Shown here: positions 1 through 6,727 of the stretch, piece by piece
Numbering within the stretch: the first letter of the stretch is position 1
How the letters are laid out: every line of letters begins with the position of its first letter
Virus record (IMG/VR): IMGVR_UViG_3300026877_000059
Span: 1-6,727 of that record
Strand: one strand, 5' to 3'
Length of the DNA: 6,727 nucleotides
Made by a program: the position numbers and the translations under genes
The notes under the pieces: model-generated
Seen by the model: only the letters and a program-made list of their open reading frames with translations
Told to the model about the DNA's origin: nothing
The model's database searches: none

Positions 1-3000
1 TGAGATATGATTTGAGATATGTTAGGCAGATTCTTTCCTTCTATTACATTAGTTGTTTTTATTTCGTTGGGGTTTATCTCAGTCTTAGACGTGAACGTTG
101 TCTCATTTCCTAACACGTCTTTAAGTTTCAGGTACTCATTTCTTACAACGTTGCCTGTAAGCTTATTTGCTAACTCGTACTCGATACTCTGCAAGTTTTC
201 GTTATTCTTCAATAGTTGCTCTATCACGTTTTTATTCAGCGTAACGAAGTTACCTACACTGTCCTCTGCAAATTTTTCCAGTTTAGCTAATGCCACAGGG
301 TCTTCTATCGCTTCCATCTTCGCAATATTGCCGTCTTTGTAAAACACATCGTAGAATTTACCACCGACATATGCTATGCCCTCATCTGGGGATATTTTCA
401 CTATGTTGCCGTCTGCCGTTTTGAGATCATCAAACAGCTGTTTGGCGACAGTCGACGATAGGTTAAGCTTGATAGTGTCCAGAGCTGTGGCTAAATCGTT
501 TGAAGAAAGAGCGTTCTTTATAGTTTCTTCGCTAACCGTTGTGAGCTTGACTTTGCCATTTTCAAATGATGCAACAACATCGTCAATAAGTTTTGGCGTA
601 ACATCCACTTTTATATCATCAGCAAGGTCTTTGCTTAACTTTACTGCAATCTTACTGGCTCCGTCAAACGCTTTTATTTTTACATCTTTGAAAATGTCAT
701 AAGTCTCTATCGTAATCTTTGTATCTGATATGTGACTTCTGACGAATTCGTATGCGTCTCCTTCAATCTTTACTATCTTGTTACCTACCCCCTTCAGTGC
801 CTTAATATCCAGCTTGTCTAGCTTTACCTCTTTTACCAAGTCATTGATTTTTGAGAAGTCTGGTGATTCAGTTACATCGCTCTTAACAGTATCGGTGACA
901 TTATTGCTTATTTTTGATATGTCGACCTTGTCCTTTATAGTATTCTCAATTTTTGACAGAACTGACTTTACGCTGTCCGTAGTCTTAAGTAAATCAATAT
1001 TGTCTATGTTGGCTGGTTCTATCAACCTTGTTGCAATTACATTAACTATAAGTGTCACTATCATTGCTATTGACGTTGGGTTTGTAAACATCTGTTTGAA
1101 AGAATTAACGGTTTCGTTGAATGACGCAGAACCGGCTAACAAATCAAATATTGTACTAGAAACAAAAGATATCGTCGCCATTACATCGAAGACTTGTCCA
1201 ACAATAGGAATAGCAGAGATTGCTATAAATATTGCACCGTCGACGATCCCTGCTAAGATTTCAGTGAAAATGTTCTTACCTAAATGCGAATAAATAAAGT
1301 TGTTAATATCATTCATCATATTGTTTAAACCGGTATTGAAGGTGTTAGCAAAACCTTCAAACACGTTAAGGAACGGATTACTTTCGGCACTCTGTATCTG
1401 TTCCTCAATTGCGTTATATTGCTGTTGGATCTGTGATACGACTTGAGAAAGGTTCTGTTGTAGCTGAGGGGAAACATATTGTGCTAAGTTCTCAGCATCT
1501 TGGGCGTACTGAAGTGCGTTCTGCAAATTAGTAGCTACTGGTTGCATTTGTTGGACGAAATTGAACGTTTCGGACAATGCTTGCCCCCAGGAAGACGCTT
1601 GTAAATGAGCCTGTTGTAATGAGGAATTCATCAGAGGCAAGTAATACGTATTGATACCTATGGTAGCTATAAGGCTATTCAAGAACTGTTTTTGTTGTGA
1701 TTGAAGGGACGGGTTATTATTAACGTCCTGTATCGCTTTGAAGTAATTATTGTTCAATACGTCGTTATACACATCATTTATATTAGTACCCTGTGTAGCT
1801 TTCAATAATTCATTATAATAATATAAAGCAGAAACCCAGTCCCCGTTACTTAACGCATTCTTTATTTGTTGCTCTAAAGATTGTGCATTCTGCAACACAC
1901 TTACTGCTTTGTTAATATTTGATATCTCATTCTGAATGTTTTGGTATGCCTGCGAATTTGACGACGGAATATACTGAAGTGCTTGTTGGAGATACCCCTT
2001 TGCCTGTTCCATCGAAGAAATTTTAGCATCAACAGATGAGGAATTCTGTGCTTGCTGAAGAAGATCATTAGCCTGTGCAATTAGGGAGTAGAATTCGCCC
2101 ATATTTGCGAATTGTTGTGCAATAGGTTGGAGTGCTTGATACTGAGAAAGGTATTGTGACGCTTCCTTGTAAGCTTGAGCTAAGGCTTGTGCCGAATTTC
2201 CACCCATGCTATGTCCATATTGTATATGTCTTTCAGTTTCAGTAGTTGCAGAAGCTATTATGTTAAAGGCATGGAATAGAGCTGAGTAGTTAGTCTCGTT
2301 TTCCTGTAATGATTGGATTATTTGATGTCTTACTTTATCAACATCGTTATCAGTAATGTTGAGTGAATTTATCTTCTGCATTGCCTTCTGTATTGTAGAA
2401 ACTACATTCTGGTAATATTTCACATAATCCGAGGGGGTACTTAAGTTACTTTGATTGTTTAATGAACTTTCAATAGAGGAATATGCACTTGCAGTAGTTC
2501 CGAATAATTGAGAAAACTGTTCTAATGCAGTATTCTCTTTTTCAAATTGATTCATATCAAATGGCGGTGTGGCGTTTATTTGCTCAAAGAGGGAGTTAGT
2601 TTGTATAGCTGAAGACATTGCGTTCTTTAACACCCTAAGAGCTTCCGTATAGTTGTTCATTAAAGCCAAGAAATATGCTGATGGGGAATTAGCATTTACT
2701 TTCTGAGTTGTGAGTGTGTTTACAGTCTTCAAGGCATCTAACGTTTGTTGGGTCTTCTCAAGCCCTGACAGATAAGTTTGAACTTGGGTCTGGTAGTTTT
2801 GTGCGATTTCAAACAGCTGTTTGGCGGAACTTTGCATATCATAGCTCTCGCTCTCACTCAACAACTGCAGAGCTTGCGAAATATCGCTTAGAATCTTATC
2901 TTTATTCGCTAGGATTGTTTTAGTGTTGGTGGACGGCGATGTGTTGTTTTGCGATGGCGTAAGCAATTGCTGAGCCTCTGCTAACAACTGCAGAGCTTGC

Positions 3001-4304
3001 GAAATGTTCTTTGCGTCTTGGATATCACCTTGGACTGACTGTAAATTTATTTGAAGATATTTAGAAGCCTTTTCCAAAACTTGATAGTTCTGCTGAAGAA
3101 TTTGATACACGCTGTCGAAATATTGAGAAAGAGAAAGAAATGTTTGCGTTGAAGGTGGTTGGGGTAATTGCTGTAAGCCCTCTAAAATCGTGAAACCTTG
3201 AATATATAAAGTTAAATTTATGTTAATATCGTTCTGTTGTGCTATTTGCGAAGCTTCTTGCAGATATTGGACAGCATCAGAATAATTTCCACTTTCTGCT
3301 TCTTGTTGCCCTTTTTTTATATCTTCAAGTATTTGCAGGTAGGCAGTGTATTTAGTATACATTTCCTGGACAGTGTCGGATAACGAACTTGCTAAACCTG
3401 ATAATGGTGTATTGTCAGCGTTAACGTTCTGTAGTTGATTCTGAGCCTGTTTTATAAGGTTTATTGCACTCTGTATTGCAGACATTGAATTATTGTTCTG
3501 TTCTGCAATATTCTGTGCATTAACTAATAGATTGACTATATTCAGAAGCTGAGAACTGACCTGTTCAGACTGTTGGTAATCGTTTGCAAGAGATGAAAAA
3601 TTGTTGTAATAACGTGATGCTTCTGTAGCGTACTGTGATGCAGTGGCGAAGAACGATTTTAATGATTGTAGATATTGTTGTAACTTCTGTAATGTTATTT
3701 CTCCCTGTGGTGGTTGCGGGAACGCAGGTATCTTCGCTAAGTAAGAAACAGCTGTTGTGACGTTTTCAAGCCCCTTGTTACTGATGTTATGTTGTTGTGC
3801 TAATTGCAGTGCCTGCTGGAGGTACTGATAAGCTTCTGCGAAGTTTGCTTTTTCCAATTCACTGTTAGCGTTATTGATGTACTGTTGTATCTGTTGTAGT
3901 GCCTGCACTGTCTGTATTTGTTGCTGTATTTGCGTTACATTAATTACGTTTGGATATTGTTGGGCTATTTGCAGAGCCTGGTTTAGGTCACTCAAAGCGG
4001 TGTTATAATCATCGTTCTTCAATGCCTCGTTTGCAGAATTGAAAAGTTGGATAACGTTAATGTAAGCGAAATAAGGCTGTAAGTTAATGTTCGGGTTTAG
4101 TTTTTGTGCGTTTTGTAAATCTGTTAATGCCTGGTTGATGTTGCCGTTCTCTGCGTCATTAATTGCCTGTTGTACATATATTAACGCTTGGATTTTTTGG
4201 GCAGTTTGAGTCAAACCGTTCTGTTGGGCTAACTGTAAGGCTTGTTGGTATTTACCCTCGGAAATTAACTGGTTTATCTGCTGTGAGATAGGATTAGCAC
4301 TCAT
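1..4304 (-). CDS. Giant (>=1434 aa, 3'-truncated) TPR-like/coiled-coil membrane-associated protein; probable bicaudavirus large virion protein (ATV ORF1940-like class)
   Basis: Manual translation from ATG at 4304 (MSANPISQQINQLISEGKYQQALQLAQQNG...) finds no stop down to position 1 (...KNLPNISQIIS). It is presumably absent from the ORF track because the stop lies outside the window. It has repeated TPR-like helices (YQQALQLAQQ, LNQALQIAQQ, LQQALQLAQQ, LQEASQIAQQ), a hydrophobic block at about aa 1016-1092 and a charged C-terminal region. The ORF itself is secure; the family label is inferred from context. Confidence 0.9.
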   Translation of the reverse strand, partial: MSANPISQQINQLISEGKYQQALQLAQQNGLTQTAQKIQALIYVQQAINDAENGNINQALTDLQNAQKLNPNINLQPYFAYINVIQLFNSANEALKNDDYNTALSDLNQALQIAQQYPNVINVTQIQQQIQTVQALQQIQQYINNANSELEKANFAEAYQYLQQALQLAQQHNISNKGLENVTTAVSYLAKIPAFPQPPQGEITLQKLQQYLQSLKSFFATASQYATEASRYYNNFSSLANDYQQSEQVSSQLLNIVNLLVNAQNIAEQNNNSMSAIQSAINLIKQAQNQLQNVNADNTPLSGLASSLSDTVQEMYTKYTAYLQILEDIKKGQQEAESGNYSDAVQYLQEASQIAQQNDININLTLYIQGFTILEGLQQLPQPPSTQTFLSLSQYFDSVYQILQQNYQVLEKASKYLQINLQSVQGDIQDAKNISQALQLLAEAQQLLTPSQNNTSPSTNTKTILANKDKILSDISQALQLLSESESYDMQSSAKQLFEIAQNYQTQVQTYLSGLEKTQQTLDALKTVNTLTTQKVNANSPSAYFLALMNNYTEALRVLKNAMSSAIQTNSLFEQINATPPFDMNQFEKENTALEQFSQLFGTTASAYSSIESSLNNQSNLSTPSDYVKYYQNVVSTIQKAMQKINSLNITDNDVDKVRHQIIQSLQENETNYSALFHAFNIIASATTETERHIQYGHSMGGNSAQALAQAYKEASQYLSQYQALQPIAQQFANMGEFYSLIAQANDLLQQAQNSSSVDAKISSMEQAKGYLQQALQYIPSSNSQAYQNIQNEISNINKAVSVLQNAQSLEQQIKNALSNGDWVSALYYYNELLKATQGTNINDVYNDVLNNNYFKAIQDVNNNPSLQSQQKQFLNSLIATIGINTYYLPLMNSSLQQAHLQASSWGQALSETFNFVQQMQPVATNLQNALQYAQDAENLAQYVSPQLQQNLSQVVSQIQQQYNAIEEQIQSAESNPFLNVFEGFANTFNTGLNNMMNDINNFIYSHLGKNIFTEILAGIVDGAIFIAISAIPIVGQVFDVMATISFVSSTIFDLLAGSASFNETVNSFKQMFTNPTSIAMIVTLIVNVIATRLIEPANIDNIDLLKTTDSVKSVLSKIENTIKDKVDISKISNNVTDTVKSDVTESPDFSKINDLVKEVKLDKLDIKALKGVGNKIVKIEGDAYEFVRSHISDTKITIETYDIFKDVKIKAFDGASKIAVKLSKDLADDIKVDVTPKLIDDVVASFENGKVKLTTVSEETIKNALSSNDLATALDTIKLNLSSTVAKQLFDDLKTADGNIVKISPDEGIAYVGGKFYDVFYKDGNIAKMEAIEDPVALAKLEKFAEDSVGNFVTLNKNVIEQLLKNNENLQSIEYELANKLTGNVVRNEYLKLKDVLGNETTFTSKTEINPNEIKTTNVIEGKNLPNISQIIS
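430..447. repeat. Dispersed palindrome copy 1: TCAAACAGCTGTTTGGCG (perfect 14-bp palindrome at 431-444)
   Basis: Read directly; identical over 18 bp to 2809-2826. Confidence 0.85.
1086..1099. repeat. Dispersed palindrome copy 2: TCAAACAGATGTTT on the minus strand
   Basis: Plus strand AAACATCTGTTTGA; one central mismatch to the main form. Confidence 0.7.
2809..2826. repeat. Dispersed palindrome copy 3: TCAAACAGCTGTTTGGCG (perfect 14-bp palindrome at 2810-2823)
   Basis: Read directly; identical over 18 bp to 430-447. Confidence 0.85.
2860..3005. repeat. Exact 23-bp direct repeat AACAACTGCAGAGCTTGCGAAAT (2860-2882 and 2983-3005)
   Basis: Both copies encode ISQALQLL in frame, 123 bp (41 codons) apart. 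Confidence 0.85.
3746..3757. repeat. Dispersed palindrome near copy: AAACAGCTGTTG (10-bp perfect core at 3747-3756)
   Basis: 11/12 match to AAACAGCTGTTT, in a different codon phase from the other intragenic copies. Confidence 0.6.
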
Positions 4305-4316
4305 TATATATATCTC

Positions 4317-4330
4317 TCAAACAGCTGTTT
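4317..4330. repeat. Dispersed palindrome copy 4 (intergenic): TCAAACAGCTGTTT
   Basis: Read directly; the 12-bp core lies 15-26 nt upstream of the giant gene's ATG. Confidence 0.85.
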
Positions 4331-4337
4331 AAAAAAA
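4331..4337 (-). terminator. Possible oligo-T terminator (T7) for the upstream three-gene unit
   Basis: T7 run 33-39 nt after the stop at 4370; archaeal intrinsic terminators are U-tracts. The same bases also form the putative TATA box. Confidence 0.35.
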
Positions 4338-4369
4338 TTATTAGATTTTTCTCTTCTCCTCCCGCTCTG

Positions 4370-4696
4370 CTATCTTTCCCTTAAAAACCAGTAGATAAAC
4401 GCCAGACCAATAATCATTATGAACACTACAATATCAAAAAACGGGTATGCAATAATGCTGTATAACATTAGCAATACATTGTATTGTTGGGAATAATACT
4501 GCGGTTGGTTTAGGGTAAATGTAGAATTAGCTATCTGTATCGATTCTTTTGTGCTATTTGTATATATTATAGAAGAGTTAGAGATGATGAGAGTTTGTTT
4601 GGTTACAAGGTTGAAGAACGGGAAAGCTACGAATACTAACATTGTAGCTAACGCAAAAAATATTACTGCCGTAGTTATGGACGGTTTCAATTGCAT
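4370..4696 (-). CDS. Small 108-aa membrane/hydrophobic hairpin protein (two hydrophobic helices, N/S/T/Q-rich loop); candidate minor virion protein
   Basis: GGTGA SD inside the end of the upstream gene (GAAGGTGATTAAGA-ATG). Hydrophobic N-terminal segment (ITTAVIFFALATMLVFVAFPFF) and C-terminal segment (IIAYPFFDIVVFIMIIGLAFIYWFL); loop sequons NSS, NST, NST. Confidence 0.85.
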   Translation of the reverse strand: MQLKPSITTAVIFFALATMLVFVAFPFFNLVTKQTLIISNSSIIYTNSTKESIQIANSTFTLNQPQYYSQQYNVLLMLYSIIAYPFFDIVVFIMIIGLAFIYWFLRER

Positions 4697-4698
4697 TC

Positions 4699-4953
4699 TT
4701 AATCACCTTCTTCCCTTATTGATAATGCTATAATAAAAATGAGAGCTACAACTATGCCTATTCCAAGTCCATACATCCAGTAGTTTATATACGGGACAAA
4801 ACTAGTGTAAGCAGTATGTATATCTGCGGAGACTACATGTGAAATATTGTTGGTAGGCTGAACAGTTTTAGACACGTTAGACTGTACAACGTTAAAAATA
4901 TTGAAAATATACACAAGAAGACCGAAAACTACAACGAATATTATCGTAAACAT
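4699..4953 (-). CDS. Small hydrophobic hairpin membrane protein (84 aa as called; probably 105 aa from ATG 5015 via a -1 shift or indel)
   Basis: Two hydrophobic helices flank a polar loop with an NIS sequon. The frame stays open upstream to 5016, and the ATG at 4953 has no SD motif. Confidence 0.8.
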   Translation of the reverse strand: MFTIIFVVVFGLLVYIFNIFNVVQSNVSKTVQPTNNISHVVSADIHTAYTSFVPYINYWMYGLGIGIVVALIFIIALSIREEGD

Positions 4954-5016
4954 AGCAATAACTATGAAAGAAATAGATGAACGTAACGCTGTTGCTAGAT
5001 CAGAAAAAAACCCATT

Positions 5017-5382
5017 TTAGTCACCCATGTTCAGAATTTGAGATTCTTCATAGCCGTTAGCCCACTCTTCTAATGTTTGTAATATTCCGCGTTTTTTAGC
5101 TTCCTTAAGTATTTCTTTCCTAACATATTCTGGTACAGGTGTGCCGTCTGGTACACCGTTCTCTTTTATTACATGTCTTATTAGAAGGACTAACCCGTGT
5201 AACGCTTTCTTCAGGGGTGGGAAGGCGTCAGACCAAGCCTCGTCCCCTGCGAGTTTTAGTGATATTTCTGGATAGTCTATTTCACCTTTTATAAATAATA
5301 GAAAGTCATGTAGTGCGTCTCTTGCATACTTCTCTGGATGTAAGTCGTCGAACTCAGATCTAACCCAATTTGACCAATTCAT
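5017..5382 (-). CDS. Bicaudavirus ATV p131-like four-helix-bundle structural protein (historically 'major coat protein' family), about 121 aa
   Basis: KYARDALHDFLLFIKGEIDYPEISLKLAGDEA...KKALHGLVLLI matches, from memory, the ATV p131 segment DYAGGAVKILDMFENGQLGYPEVTLKLAGEEA...KEAIHAIVKMI. I prefer ATG 5382 over the track's TTG 5394 because GGGTGG (SD-like) lies at 5392-5387. Confidence 0.8.
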   Translation of the reverse strand: MNWSNWVRSEFDDLHPEKYARDALHDFLLFIKGEIDYPEISLKLAGDEAWSDAFPPLKKALHGLVLLIRHVIKENGVPDGTPVPEYVRKEILKEAKKRGILQTLEEWANGYEESQILNMGD

Positions 5383-5393
5383 TTTTCCACCCA

Positions 5394-5407
5394 AAACATA
5401 TGTTTGA
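5394..5407. repeat. Dispersed palindrome copy 5 (intergenic): TCAAACATATGTTT on the minus strand
   Basis: Perfect 12-bp palindrome AAACATATGTTT; both central bases differ (GC to TA) while symmetry is retained. Confidence 0.75.
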
Positions 5408-5422
5408 GTAATGGTTAAAAAA
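5394..5422 (-). promoter_or_regulatory. Putative TATA box (TTTTTTAA, 5422-5415) followed by the palindrome AAACATATGTTT (5394-5405), upstream of the p131-like gene
   Basis: Minus strand reads TAA-TATTTTTTAACCATTACTCAAACATATGTTTTGGGTGGAAAA-ATG. The T6 run could also terminate the upstream gene. Confidence 0.55.
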
Positions 5423-5424
5423 TA

Positions 5425-6727
5425 TTATGAGATCTTGAAGCCCTGCTTTACCATCTCAAGGATCTTCTTAGCTTTTTCCTCTTCACTCTGCGTTAATTTA
5501 CTAATACCGTAGTTCATCAGTTCTTCTTTCTTTAATTCAGACAGATAGTTGTAATAGTTAACAAGTGCGAACAGTGTACCGAATAAATTAATTAATTGTA
5601 TTCTGTACTTTGGATTCCTTCCAGTTTCCTTTGCAACATTATCTATGAACGTGTCCTTAAGTGTCTCAGGGAATGCTGATAACTCTTGCCTCGCCTTGTA
5701 CAAACAGATTTCATCCTCTTCCGAGCATATTCCTAGTAATTTTGTTATAGTTTTGAACACCTGCATGTCGAGGGTTGAGGGGCTTACAGTAGTTTTAACA
5801 ATTAACGCACCATATTGATCGTCAAAAGCTTTCTTTGCAAAATTCAAGAGCGATTTTAATTCCTTCAATTGCCCTTCATTAGTTTTATTGAGGTCGAGGT
5901 CATTTATCCTTAGTACAGAATACTTGCCGTTTGGCAACAAATCATTAGGCGACCCGACCAACAACGTATTATTAGCATCTACGATTAAGGGTAACGAGAA
6001 ACCTGCAGACTGTAGATTTGTAAAAGCGTCCACAAGGTCTTGAAGGTATTTAAGCTTCTCAGGGTTGGCTTCCTTAAGGTTCATTGTATCGTTTACCTCT
6101 TGGTAACTCTTATTCTTAAATAAATTTACGAACGAGAAGATCAAATACGCATACTTGTATAATTGTACTATGTTACTCAATTGATTTTGATACCTTTCGA
6201 ACTCGTCTGGACTCAGCGGTCTGAGGACTCTTAAGTCTAACACTTGGTCTGGAGCGAAAGAGTCTAACAGTGGTATAAGATAATTTTGTCTAAGTTCTGC
6301 GAATATATTAGATAGAACACTTCTAGTAGTTTCTTCTATTACATTTCCAGACTGGTATGTAACTTTCTTGCTTGAAGATTTGTATTCAGATGGGAATTTA
6401 GTAACTAACGCCAAGACGGTGGTAGGGAGAATGCTGGCGTTGTTAGTATCTAACAATTCTAGGATCCTATTCCAATTCTTTTGTAACTCGTTCCAGACCT
6501 TTTCAGCAAACTCTTCACGCTCTTTTCTGCTTAAAGACTCCCCTTGTTTTACGCCGTATCTGTTTAAGTATGGTCTTAGCCAATCTGGAATGTATAGTGA
6601 AAGTTCCATATTGAGTACTTTTTCTAATTCTACTTTATTTTGCTCAATATTACTATTTTCTACCGCGTTCTGTTCTACGTTCTGTTGTTCAGGAGCAGGG
6701 ATTTGTTGTTGAGGAGTACCTAAAACT
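5425..6727 (-). CDS. Uncharacterised alpha-helical viral protein, 5'-truncated (>=433 aa)
   Basis: The track's 394-aa ORF (ATG 6609) stays open in frame to the window edge (VLGTPQQQIPAPEQQNVEQNAVENSNIEQNKVELEKVLN-M...), and ATG 6609 has no SD. No catalytic motif recognised. Confidence 0.85.
   Translation of the reverse strand, partial: VLGTPQQQIPAPEQQNVEQNAVENSNIEQNKVELEKVLNMELSLYIPDWLRPYLNRYGVKQGESLSRKEREEFAEKVWNELQKNWNRILELLDTNNASILPTTVLALVTKFPSEYKSSSKKVTYQSGNVIEETTRSVLSNIFAELRQNYLIPLLDSFAPDQVLDLRVLRPLSPDEFERYQNQLSNIVQLYKYAYLIFSFVNLFKNKSYQEVNDTMNLKEANPEKLKYLQDLVDAFTNLQSAGFSLPLIVDANNTLLVGSPNDLLPNGKYSVLRINDLDLNKTNEGQLKELKSLLNFAKKAFDDQYGALIVKTTVSPSTLDMQVFKTITKLLGICSEEDEICLYKARQELSAFPETLKDTFIDNVAKETGRNPKYRIQLINLFGTLFALVNYYNYLSELKKEELMNYGISKLTQSEEEKAKKILEMVKQGFKIS

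Follow-up and report, generated by a model that had tools for sequence, protein, structure and literature searches.

A 12-base palindrome, AAACA(G/T)(C/A)TGTTT, recurs about 30 times per genome in SMV1-like archaeal viruses, where it lies at about half of the candidate promoters and is also written into genes by codon choice. We believe that this palindrome is most likely the many-copy binding site of a viral regulator, although this function is inferred from sequence and position alone. We found no published description of the element, and a literature search with the literal sequence returned only unrelated primer and E-box hits. The starting point was a window of 6,727 nucleotides, comprising the whole of IMG/VR contig IMGVR_UViG_3300026877_000059, which is 90.5% identical to Sulfolobus monocaudavirus SMV1.

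Results

The recurrence of the palindrome that was initially noticed by a sequence-only reading of the window is real. The window carries five copies of AAACANNTGTTT (Table 1) against 0.03 expected, and none of 200 dinucleotide shuffles reached five. A further copy matching at 11 of 12 positions is also present, three copies are the exact 12-mer AAACAGCTGTTT, and all four CAGCTG hexamers in the window lie inside AACAGCTGTT. Two of the five full copies are non-coding, whereas the remaining three and the 11/12 copy lie inside the gp09 open reading frame. However, some details required correction. The GC content is 37.5% rather than the 35% used for the initial estimate. The three full coding copies share one codon phase and encode K-Q-(L/M)-F, such that only the 11/12 copy is in another phase. 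Furthermore, the TC dinucleotide present on one flank of all five window copies had been taken to give the element an orientation, but this claim is not supported. Genome-wide, TC is part of a symmetric extension of the palindrome, CTC...GAG, which is found on both flanks in 4, on one flank in 17 and on neither flank in 7 of the 28 SMV1 copies. The full consensus is CTC-AAACA(G/T)(C/A)TGTTT-GAG.

Table 1. Palindrome copies, TATA-like boxes and genes in the window.
Coordinates	Strand	Feature	Sequence	Context	Conservation or basis
5394..5405	.	Motif copy, gp06 promoter	AAACATATGTTT	In gene sense (minus strand), 9 nt downstream of the TATA-like box and 11 nt upstream of the gp06 ATG	Identical in SMV1, SMV1a, SMV4 and SMV3 while the flanks carry substitutions and an indel; SMV2 has a one-mismatch copy, GAACATATGTTT
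5415..5425	-	TATA-like box of gp06	ATATTTTTTAA	Abuts the gp05 stop codon (5425-5427)	Read from the sequence; same arrangement in SMV1, SMV3 and SMV4
5017..5382	-	gp06, 121 aa, RIP/P131 family		Gene served by the 5394 copy	SMV1 orthologue matches PF22238 and ATV ORF145
4319..4330	.	Motif copy, gp09 promoter	AAACAGCTGTTT	First three bases, in gene sense, form the end of the TATA-like box; ATG follows 14 nt after the motif	Invariant in the window, SMV1, SMV1a, SMV4 and SMV3 next to an indel-rich flank; lost in SMV2
4328..4337	-	TATA-like box of gp09	TTTTTTTAAA	Overlaps the motif; predicted transcription start at or just before the ATG, giving a leaderless or near-leaderless mRNA	Sequence and strict TATA scan of the relatives; start inferred from the usual spacing of about 26 nt between TATA box and start in Sulfolobales
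1..4304	-	gp09, giant Q/N-rich virion structural protein		First 1434 codons, running off the window; carries the four internal copies	
3746..3757	.	11/12 copy inside gp09	CAACAGCTGTTT in gene sense	Different codon phase (T-A-V)	Conserved in SMV1, SMV1a and SMV4
2811..2822	.	Intragenic copy	AAACAGCTGTTT	gp09 codons 495-498 (K-Q-L-F)	SMV2 keeps it exactly; SMV3 and SMV4 have CAACAGCTGTTT
1086..1097	.	Intragenic copy	AAACAGATGTTT in gene sense	gp09 codons 1070-1073 (K-Q-M-F); an in-frame ATG follows 21 nt later	Conserved in SMV1, SMV1a, SMV3 and SMV4; decayed in SMV2
432..443	.	Intragenic copy	AAACAGCTGTTT	gp09 codons 1288-1291 (K-Q-L-F); the surrounding 18-mer is identical to that at 2809-2826	Conserved in SMV1, SMV1a and SMV4; changed in SMV3 and SMV2

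The same enrichment is evident in complete genomes. SMV1, SMV4 and SMV3 carry 28, 30 and 31 copies, respectively, against about 0.2 expected, and in an unbiased scan the motif is by far their most over-represented palindrome. All SMV1-like environmental contigs have about one copy per kb. One-mismatch copies are also enriched fourfold in SMV1, with 19 observed against 4.8 expected. The centre of the palindrome tolerates GC, TA, GA and TC, while the outer AAACA/TGTTT is invariant. ATV/ATV2 and ATSV share the core ACAKMTGT but with different, lineage-specific flanks, even though SMV1 and ATV2 are both recorded on S. solfataricus. In contrast, SMV2 has largely lost the motif, and it is absent from STSV2, SSV1 and SIRV2. 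A scan of genome contigs with TCAAACANNTGTTTGA returned random bacterial matches that were uninformative about Sulfolobales, but 49 kb of Sulfolobales chromosome and integrated-plasmid DNA served as a small control and showed only background counts.

The copies are strongly biased in their location. Of the 28 SMV1 copies, 17 (about 60%) lie in the 12% of DNA that is non-coding, and 20 of 38 candidate transcription-unit starts have a site within 80 nt upstream. In a strict TATA-box scan of motif-ATG pairings in SMV1, SMV3 and SMV4, the TATA box lies upstream of the motif in 18 pairings and downstream in 25, whereas 36 pairings had no strict TATA match. Where the TATA box is upstream, the gap from motif to ATG is 10-16 nt, and where the TATA box is 6-10 nt upstream the A/T-rich centre CATATG or CAGATG is used. 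In the other group, the site sits 0-40 nt upstream of the TATA box. A tendency for sites to favour promoters of the structural gene block (13 of 19 against 7 of 19 promoters) was not significant (P = 0.10). Likewise, there is no simple link to expression timing, because promoters where the motif sits between TATA box and ATG include genes reported in SMV1a as early (gp05, gp06, gp09) and as late or full-time (gp03, gp11) (PMC12199143). The spacing of copies is more even than random (CV 0.54-0.71 against 0.95) in SMV1, SMV4 and ATV, and in SMV3 when one-mismatch copies are counted. Some copies lie at convergent gene ends, both in ATV and at SMV1 44070-44091.

Intergenic copies show a phylogenetic footprint, being 0.99 (SMV4) and 0.96 (SMV3) identical to SMV1, against 0.75-0.87 for their flanks. 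Copies inside genes are held by codon choice, and the enrichment survives the codon-aware null that had been proposed in advance as a possible refutation. Synonymous-codon shuffles of the window's genes give 0.38 copies against 3 observed (P = 0.0014), and SMV1 has 11 coding copies against 1.4 under synonymous shuffles and 0.09 under codon-order shuffles. All five K-Q-(L/M)-F peptides use exactly the motif codons, although CTG represents only 11% of Leu codons in the window's genes. ATV has 28 coding copies against 2.2 expected, with none in the reading frame that would require cysteine. One copy is conserved at the same codons of the integrase gene in SMV, ATV and ATSV.

We also sought candidates for the predicted binding protein. 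SMV1 encodes at least three ribbon-helix-helix proteins, with gp50, gp37 and an unannotated open reading frame at 41757-41960 on the minus strand as candidates, but no candidate has a distribution across genomes that matches the motif, and the tandem ribbon-helix-helix protein gp50 is also present in motif-poor SMV2. The gp43 gene (ATV ORF98a) has a motif copy at its 3′ end in both lineages, and its product is 56% identical between them. However, its homologues sit in integrated conjugative plasmids with no motif nearby and it has no recognizable DNA-binding domain, and therefore it was rejected. Similarly, gp01/gp02 and gp44 are present in SMV1, SMV3, SMV4 and ATSV and absent from SMV2 and STSV2, but were not detected in ATV. 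These were dropped because gp01/gp02 have no recognized domain (PHROG family of unknown function) and gp44 is a published antitoxin-like protein. Searches with gp28 and gp38 gave no structural or family match. The palindrome is also not found in the text or examined supplements of the study on anti-defence promoter motifs (PMC11065993), leaving aside the logos in its figures.

Discussion

The proposal of the sequence-only reading, that a high-density binding site for a dimeric protein is present and cannot be explained by a protein motif, is only partly supported, in that its core fits all the indirect evidence while several of the functions it listed fare less well. Of these functions, the operator of a global viral regulator is best supported, because the copies sit on or beside TATA boxes at about half of the transcription-unit starts. 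We therefore favour, with moderate confidence, a DNA-level site for a symmetric, dimeric, sequence-specific protein, most likely encoded by the virus, that would be used as a many-copy operator in a manner resembling mycobacteriophage stoperators or phiC31 intergenic inverted repeats. The enrichment, the conservation, the positions and the codon-level selection are established by our analysis, whereas the binding of a protein, its viral origin and the direction of regulation are inferred, and a host factor conserved across Sulfolobales is not excluded. In this view, a protein bound at promoters where the TATA box lies upstream of the motif, which include those of gp06 and gp09, would keep TFB and RNA polymerase off the DNA and repress transcription. 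At the second group, where the site abuts or lies up to about 40 nt upstream of the BRE/TATA elements, including at divergent promoter pairs, it could block TBP/TFB or help recruit them. Copies kept inside long genes would act as auxiliary sites, for example as roadblocks to elongation, as loop anchors, or to raise local occupancy.

Gene regulation in the large spindle-shaped archaeal viruses (SMV1-4, ATV, ATSV) is almost unknown, and the recent SMV1a transcriptome study calls its pattern 'complicated' (PMC12199143). A single 12-bp palindrome at about half of all promoters, and additionally kept inside genes, offers a concrete handle that can be used as bait for the regulator. It predicts which genes are co-controlled, including the major capsid protein gene and the homologue of the RNA-polymerase inhibitor RIP, and offers a way to examine whether these viruses silence their genomes globally, as temperate mycobacteriophages do. 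The conserved core with lineage-specific flanks suggests a regulator and its sites evolving together, which could underlie immunity between related viruses. As far as we know, codon-level embedding of a viral operator in genes has not been reported for archaeal viruses.

A promoter operator does not by itself explain the copies kept inside genes, the even spacing, or the copies at convergent gene ends. These features, together with the enrichment of one-mismatch copies, are compatible with genome-architecture or self-marking sites, where a viral protein would nucleate on evenly dispersed copies to bridge, condense, segregate or shield the circular genome, and where the promoter association would reflect only the availability of free sequence space. 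This alternative is not excluded but seems unlikely given the tight positions before start codons and on or beside TATA boxes. A simple packaging mark in particular is weakened, because STSV2 shares the capsid family and lacks the motif, and SMV2 shares the whole structural module at 58-94% identity yet has largely lost it, so virion assembly does not depend on it. A parS-like site is not supported. The roughly 30 sites are dispersed rather than being a few sites clustered near a parAB operon or the origin, and tblastn with the SMV1 proteins at E <= 0.05 matched nothing at the annotated ATV ParB-like gene gp70, although sensitivity is limited because the Pfam scans covered only the small SMV1 proteins. 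Even less likely than genome-architecture sites, but still conceivable, is a more far-reaching reading, in which the dispersed, evenly spaced copies, including those written into genes, are nucleation points for a virus-encoded protein that coats or bridges the whole episome, silencing it in the carrier or lysogenic state and marking it as self. Such a protein might also shield the genome from host surveillance, and so bear on the published but unexplained resistance of SMV1 to CRISPR spacer acquisition and interference (PMC3839810). This would be an archaeal-virus counterpart of spreading systems such as ParB/parS or of silencing by stoperators.

The remaining alternatives are less probable still. 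A core promoter or terminator element read by the host basal machinery without a dedicated regulator, such as a promoter-proximal or initiator-like element or a bidirectional terminator, is doubtful. The motif does lie in the region expected to melt at several promoters, and in ATV many copies lie 1-11 nt after a stop codon and are followed by T-rich runs, but its position relative to the TATA box varies (upstream, overlapping and downstream), it is absent from other viruses transcribed by the same machinery, its flanks are lineage-specific, and intragenic copies would be harmful as terminators. The target of a methyltransferase, a nicking or restriction-like nuclease, a recombinase or a transposase is slightly less likely again. 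The hexamer centre CAGCTG/CATATG of this compact palindrome looks like a type II restriction site, one copy lies inside the terminal region of the IS200/605 insertion in SMV1, an IS-end-like 24-mer sits 16 nt from another copy, and the integrase gene carries the conserved copy noted above. However, SMV1 has no annotated methyltransferase, restriction sites are normally avoided by viruses rather than enriched 150-fold, the centre is tolerant whereas the outer bases are not, and the positional tie to TATA boxes is not expected for such an enzyme. An RNA hairpin for processing, translation control or coat-protein binding is very unlikely. Although the 18-mer can form a 7-bp stem with a tetraloop at 37 °C (-6.5 kcal/mol), the folding energy of the 12- and 18-mers is 0 kcal/mol at 78 °C, the sequence is invariant with no compensatory changes, there is no Rfam match, and at most promoters the site is predicted to lie upstream of the transcription start and outside the transcript. 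Finally, a by-product of a repeated K-Q-L-F peptide, of chance or of duplication might be suggested by the shared phase and peptide of the three full coding copies in the window, but this is refuted by the synonymous-shuffle results. In addition, non-coding copies are the majority in SMV1, flanking protein sequences are not homologous between copies, and other coding copies use other phases.

Among known systems, the closest are the stoperators and operators of the mycobacteriophage L5 / Cluster A immunity repressor, where more than twenty copies of one short site are spread over a genome of about 50 kb, in promoters and in short intergenic spaces, giving genome-wide silencing by a single repressor (PMC9283540) that blocks initiation and elongation. 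The copy numbers and locations found here agree with this arrangement. The Cluster A motif reportedly varies between lineages together with the repressor (PMC6550527), much as the flank variants differ between SMV, ATV and ATSV. However, L5 sites are asymmetric 13-mers bound by a monomer, with an orientation that follows the direction of transcription, whereas the present site is a palindrome with no orientation, the host is an archaeon with TBP/TFB promoters, many copies lie inside genes, and no repressor is known. The conserved inverted repeats of actinophage phiC31, which are palindromic, and the dispersed C1 operators of phage P1 are likewise repressor operators repeated many times in intergenic regions throughout a temperate phage genome. 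These are bacterial systems with 17-bp sites and known repressor genes, and they are not known to have copies embedded in genes by codon choice.

Archaeal repressor sites between TATA box and start codon provide another parallel, as exemplified by the aCcr1-box of the ribbon-helix-helix factor aCcr1 and its ATV gp29 / SMV3 gp63 homologues. The promoters where the TATA box lies upstream of the motif, including both window promoters, share this placement. However, the published 9-bp box, A(T/G)G(A)TA(G)A(T/G)TACN, differs from AAACAKMTGTTT and is found in host cell-division promoters, SMV1 is reported to lack an identified aCcr1-type regulator, and the copy number per genome is far lower. Bacterial matS/MatP, SlmA and Noc binding sites and parS/ParB are 12-16 bp palindromes bound by dimers at many chromosomal positions for genome organization, and MatP is a ribbon-helix-helix protein, but their densities are tens of kb per site, they have no promoter geometry, and parS sites cluster near the origin. 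The DNA uptake sequences of Neisseria (DUS) and Haemophilus (USS) serve natural transformation in bacteria, are not palindromic and are not tied to TATA boxes or start codons, although they also occur at about one copy per kb and include copies inside genes that are accommodated by the reading frame.

Sequence context and occurrence of the palindrome

The window corresponds to a complete IMG/VR contig (UViG_3300026877_000059) that is 90.5% identical over its whole length of 6727 bases to positions 3369-10091 of Sulfolobus monocaudavirus SMV1, in reverse orientation. All of its genes lie on the minus strand, and these include two small membrane proteins, gp07 and gp08, in addition to gp05, gp06 and gp09. 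The SMV1 orthologue of gp06 belongs to the RIP/P131 family (PF22238) and is homologous to ATV ORF145, the RNA-polymerase inhibitor RIP. The coordinates of the features discussed here and in the following sections are collected below.

Coordinates of the genes, motif copies and other features considered in this study
Sequence	Position	Strand	Feature
Window	5425-6727	-	3' part of gp05
Window	5017-5382	-	gp06; its promoter carries a motif copy
Window		-	gp07 and gp08, small membrane proteins
Window	1-4304	-	gp09, giant virion protein, first 1434 codons
Window	432		AAACANNTGTTT copy inside gp09
Window	1086		AAACANNTGTTT copy inside gp09
Window	2811		AAACANNTGTTT copy inside gp09
Window	3746		11/12 copy inside gp09
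Window	4319		AAACANNTGTTT copy, intergenic
Window	5394		AAACANNTGTTT copy, intergenic
Window	2860-2882 and 2983-3005		Exact 23-nt direct repeat inside gp09
Window	3235, 3793, 3958 and 4222		Looser 23-nt repeat family, N-terminal part of gp09
SMV1	16772-17233		Annotated start of gp11, running across its own TATA box and motif
SMV1	22431-22454		24-mer arm near the gp16-promoter copy
SMV1	27038-27140		IS200/605 insertion region with its own motif copy
SMV1	37656		Motif core in the integrase gene
ATV	62273 (12273 in ATV stretch L008)		Motif core in the integrase gene
ATSV	60986 (10986 in ATSV stretch L151)		Motif core in the integrase gene
SMV1	41757-41960	-	Unannotated ribbon-helix-helix ORF
SMV1	44070-44091		Perfect 22-bp palindrome at the gp43/gp44 junction
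ATV (stretch L006)	7458-7543		Two copies (7458/7536) between convergent gene ends
ATV (stretch L006)	18166/19790		Copies between convergent gene ends
ATSV (stretch L148)	5885, 22421 and 42456		Extended palindrome, third flank variant
ATSV (stretch L151)	1882 and 4058		Extended palindrome, third flank variant

The observation made in the sequence-only reading, that a short palindrome recurs throughout this DNA, was confirmed. Five copies of AAACANNTGTTT are present when only 0.03 are expected, and no shuffled sequence reached five. All four CAGCTG hexamers lie within AACAGCTGTT. The three full copies located in coding sequence share phase 0 and encode K-Q-(L/M)-F, whereas the 11/12 copy is in phase 1 and encodes T-A-V. 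The TC flank that had been proposed to give the element an orientation is real, being present in 5 of 5 copies in the window. However, genome-wide it proves to be the symmetric extension CTC...GAG of the palindrome, and it gives no orientation. Repeats of 23 nt also lie within gp09, with the two exact copies located 123 nt (41 codons) apart.

Distribution among SMV genomes

The palindrome is far more abundant than expected in each of the four SMV genomes tabulated here, and in an unbiased scan of all 5-gap-5 palindromes it is by far the top element in SMV1, SMV3 and SMV4. Copies with one mismatch are also enriched fourfold in SMV1 (19 against 4.8), and all SMV1-like metagenomic contigs carry about one copy per kb.

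Observed and expected copies of AAACANNTGTTT in SMV genomes
Genome	Observed	Expected
SMV1	28	0.18
SMV1a	27	0.18
SMV4	30	0.19
SMV3	31	0.22

Although SMV1 is 88% coding, 17 of its 28 copies are non-coding, and an eighteenth precedes the better-supported start of gp11. Specifically, the annotated start of SMV1 gp11 runs across its own TATA box and motif, and the SMV1a annotation, with the ATG located 10 nt after the motif, fits the promoter better. Of 38 candidate transcription-unit starts, 20 have an exact or one-mismatch copy within 80 nt upstream. These include the major capsid gene gp03 and gp05, gp06, gp09, gp10, gp11, gp13, gp14, gp16 and gp24/25. Promoters that lack a copy include those of the integrase, the DnaA-like gene and the ribbon-helix-helix genes gp37 and gp50.

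The IS200/605 insertion of SMV1 carries its own copy, GTC-AAACATATGTTT-GAG, between inverted arms. The same 24-mer arm lies 16 nt from the copy in the gp16 promoter, and SMV1a lacks both the insertion and the copy within it.

Promoter architecture

When copies are oriented by the downstream gene, two arrangements become apparent. In one, the motif follows the TATA box, such that a purine-rich stretch and a TATA-like box (TTTTTTAA, TTTATTAA and similar) lie 0-10 nt upstream of the motif and the ATG follows 10-16 nt after it. Both intergenic copies in the window belong to this group. For the copy at 4319, the AAA of the motif completes the box TTTTTTTAAA and the ATG is 14 nt downstream, and so the mRNA is predicted to be leaderless. 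For the copy at 5394, the box ends 9 nt upstream and the ATG is 11 nt downstream, behind a GGTGG Shine-Dalgarno-like stretch. In the other arrangement, the motif lies 0-40 nt upstream of a TATA box that is itself about 22-25 nt before the ATG, and this includes divergent promoter pairs that share one central copy, such as gp24/gp25.

With a strict TATA pattern, 18 motif-ATG pairings in SMV1, SMV3 and SMV4 have the motif after the box and 25 have it before, whereas 36 had no strict TATA match. Where the box is 6-10 nt upstream of the motif, the centre is almost always CATATG or CAGATG, and where the box overlaps the motif the centre is CAGCTG. The transcript positions described here are predictions that rest on the usual spacing between TATA box and start in Sulfolobales, rather than on mapped transcription starts.

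Evidence for selection at the DNA level

Intergenic copies form a phylogenetic footprint. Identity to SMV1 over the motif is 0.99 in SMV4 and 0.96 in SMV3, compared with 0.75-0.87 in the 40 nt on each side, and both window promoters show the motif to be invariant next to indels. Copies within genes are less conserved between species (0.88-0.93 against 0.79-0.88 for their flanks), but they are nevertheless clearly selected as DNA. Synonymous-codon shuffles give 0.38 copies in the window against 3 observed (P = 0.0014), and the same shuffles give 1.4 copies in SMV1 against 11 observed, whereas shuffling of codon order gives 0.09. Furthermore, all five K-Q-(L/M)-F peptides of the SMV1 proteome are spelled with exactly the motif codons, even though CTG makes up only 11% of leucine codons in the window's genes. 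A protein motif is therefore not the cause, and it is the protein that accommodates the DNA element.

Related elements in other viruses

ATV has no 12-mer but carries 44 copies of the core ACAGCTGT, against about 1 expected. Sixteen of these are in its 8% non-coding DNA, and 28 are in genes, against 2.2 under synonymous shuffles and never in the reading frame that would require cysteine. ATV2 is the same, with 38 copies in 50 kb. The flanks are lineage-specific, with cTC-AA-ACAK in SMVs, T.AARA-ACAG in ATV and ATV2, and GAAAyC-ACAK in ATSV, where CACAGCTGTG occurs 7 times against 0.03 expected. The ATSV version is an extended palindrome of roughly TGAAAyC-ACAKMTGT-GwTTTCA, located mostly in short intergenic gaps. 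In SMV1, ATV and ATSV the motif core lies at the same codons (A-Y-K-Q-L-F/Y-D) of the integrase gene, and in SMV3 and SMV4 it sits 12 nt before an ATG that opens a 141-aa C-terminal integrase ORF, annotated as a separate gene in SMV4.

In contrast, STSV2, SSV1, SIRV2 and 49 kb of Sulfolobales chromosome and integrated-plasmid DNA show only background counts. SMV2 shares nearly all structural genes with SMV1, at 58-94% identity, but has a higher GC content (43.6%) and keeps only 2 exact and 10 core copies, some of which are decayed remnants at the homologous promoters.

Proposed function

The strict palindrome, the invariant outer bases and the tolerated G/T centre fit a symmetric dimer contacting two abutting half-sites. 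An RNA role is unlikely, because the hairpin is unfolded at 78 C, there is no covariation, no Rfam match was found, and at most promoters the site is predicted to lie outside the transcript. Sites on or just upstream of the BRE/TATA elements could block TBP/TFB or recruit them. We therefore interpret the element as a many-copy operator of a global regulator, which would work like the operator and stoperator network of mycobacteriophage L5 (PMC9283540). The intergenic inverted repeats of phiC31 provide another parallel. Given that SMV1 and ATV2 are both recorded on S. solfataricus and yet use different flanks, a virus-encoded binder that evolves with its sites is favoured. Candidates for this binder in SMV1 are the tandem ribbon-helix-helix protein gp50 (phrog_876 ‘transcriptional repressor’), which is conserved in SMV1-4, the unannotated ribbon-helix-helix ORF on the minus strand, and gp37, although on present evidence none can be assigned. 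The enrichment of the sites and the strong selection acting on them are established by sequence analysis, whereas protein binding, the viral origin of the binder and the operator function are inferred.

Some characteristics of the element are not explained by this model. Copies inside genes are under selection, and the spacing of copies is more even than random (CV 0.54-0.71 against 0.95, P <= 0.015), both for exact copies in SMV1, SMV4 and ATV and, only when one-mismatch copies are counted, for SMV3. In addition, some copies sit at convergent gene ends where no annotated promoter is present, including two copies located 78 nt apart in ATV and the perfect palindrome at the SMV1 gp43/gp44 junction. 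These features keep a genome-wide architectural or self-marking role alive as the main rival. However, a simple packaging signal is disfavoured by STSV2, which lacks the motif, and by SMV2, which has largely lost it, although both share the capsid family or the structural module. The temporal classes reported for SMV1a do not sort by promoter arrangement, as gp05, gp06 and gp09 are early, and gp03 and gp11 are late or full-time (PMC12199143). The interpretation offered in the sequence-only reading is supported in part: an operator for a global viral regulator, one of the several functions it listed, is the one we favour, but its suggestion of a parS-like site is not borne out.

Comparison with known elements

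The element is not a member of the stoperator family in the strict sense, because it is symmetric rather than asymmetric and oriented. It is not parS-like, because the sites are dispersed and the SMV1 proteins matched nothing at the ATV ParB-like gene in tblastn at E <= 0.05, and it is not the aCcr1-box, because the sequence differs. Full-text searches of open-access PubMed Central and bioRxiv, made by virus name with motif terms and by the literal sequences, found no description of the element, although an earlier mention cannot be excluded in the original genome papers, which appeared in subscription journals beyond the reach of these searches. It is likewise not mentioned in the papers we examined on the SMV1a transcriptome, anti-defence promoter motifs, aCcr1 and SMV1 CRISPR. 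Many-copy operators of global viral regulators are already known, and we believe that the real, strongly selected and family-wide element described here is best regarded as a new, palindromic form of such an operator in archaeal viruses, with its presumed regulator yet to be identified. The conserved small protein gp43 (ATV ORF98a) is widespread in integrated conjugative plasmids of Sulfolobales chromosomes, where it is located next to TraG/VirB4-like genes.
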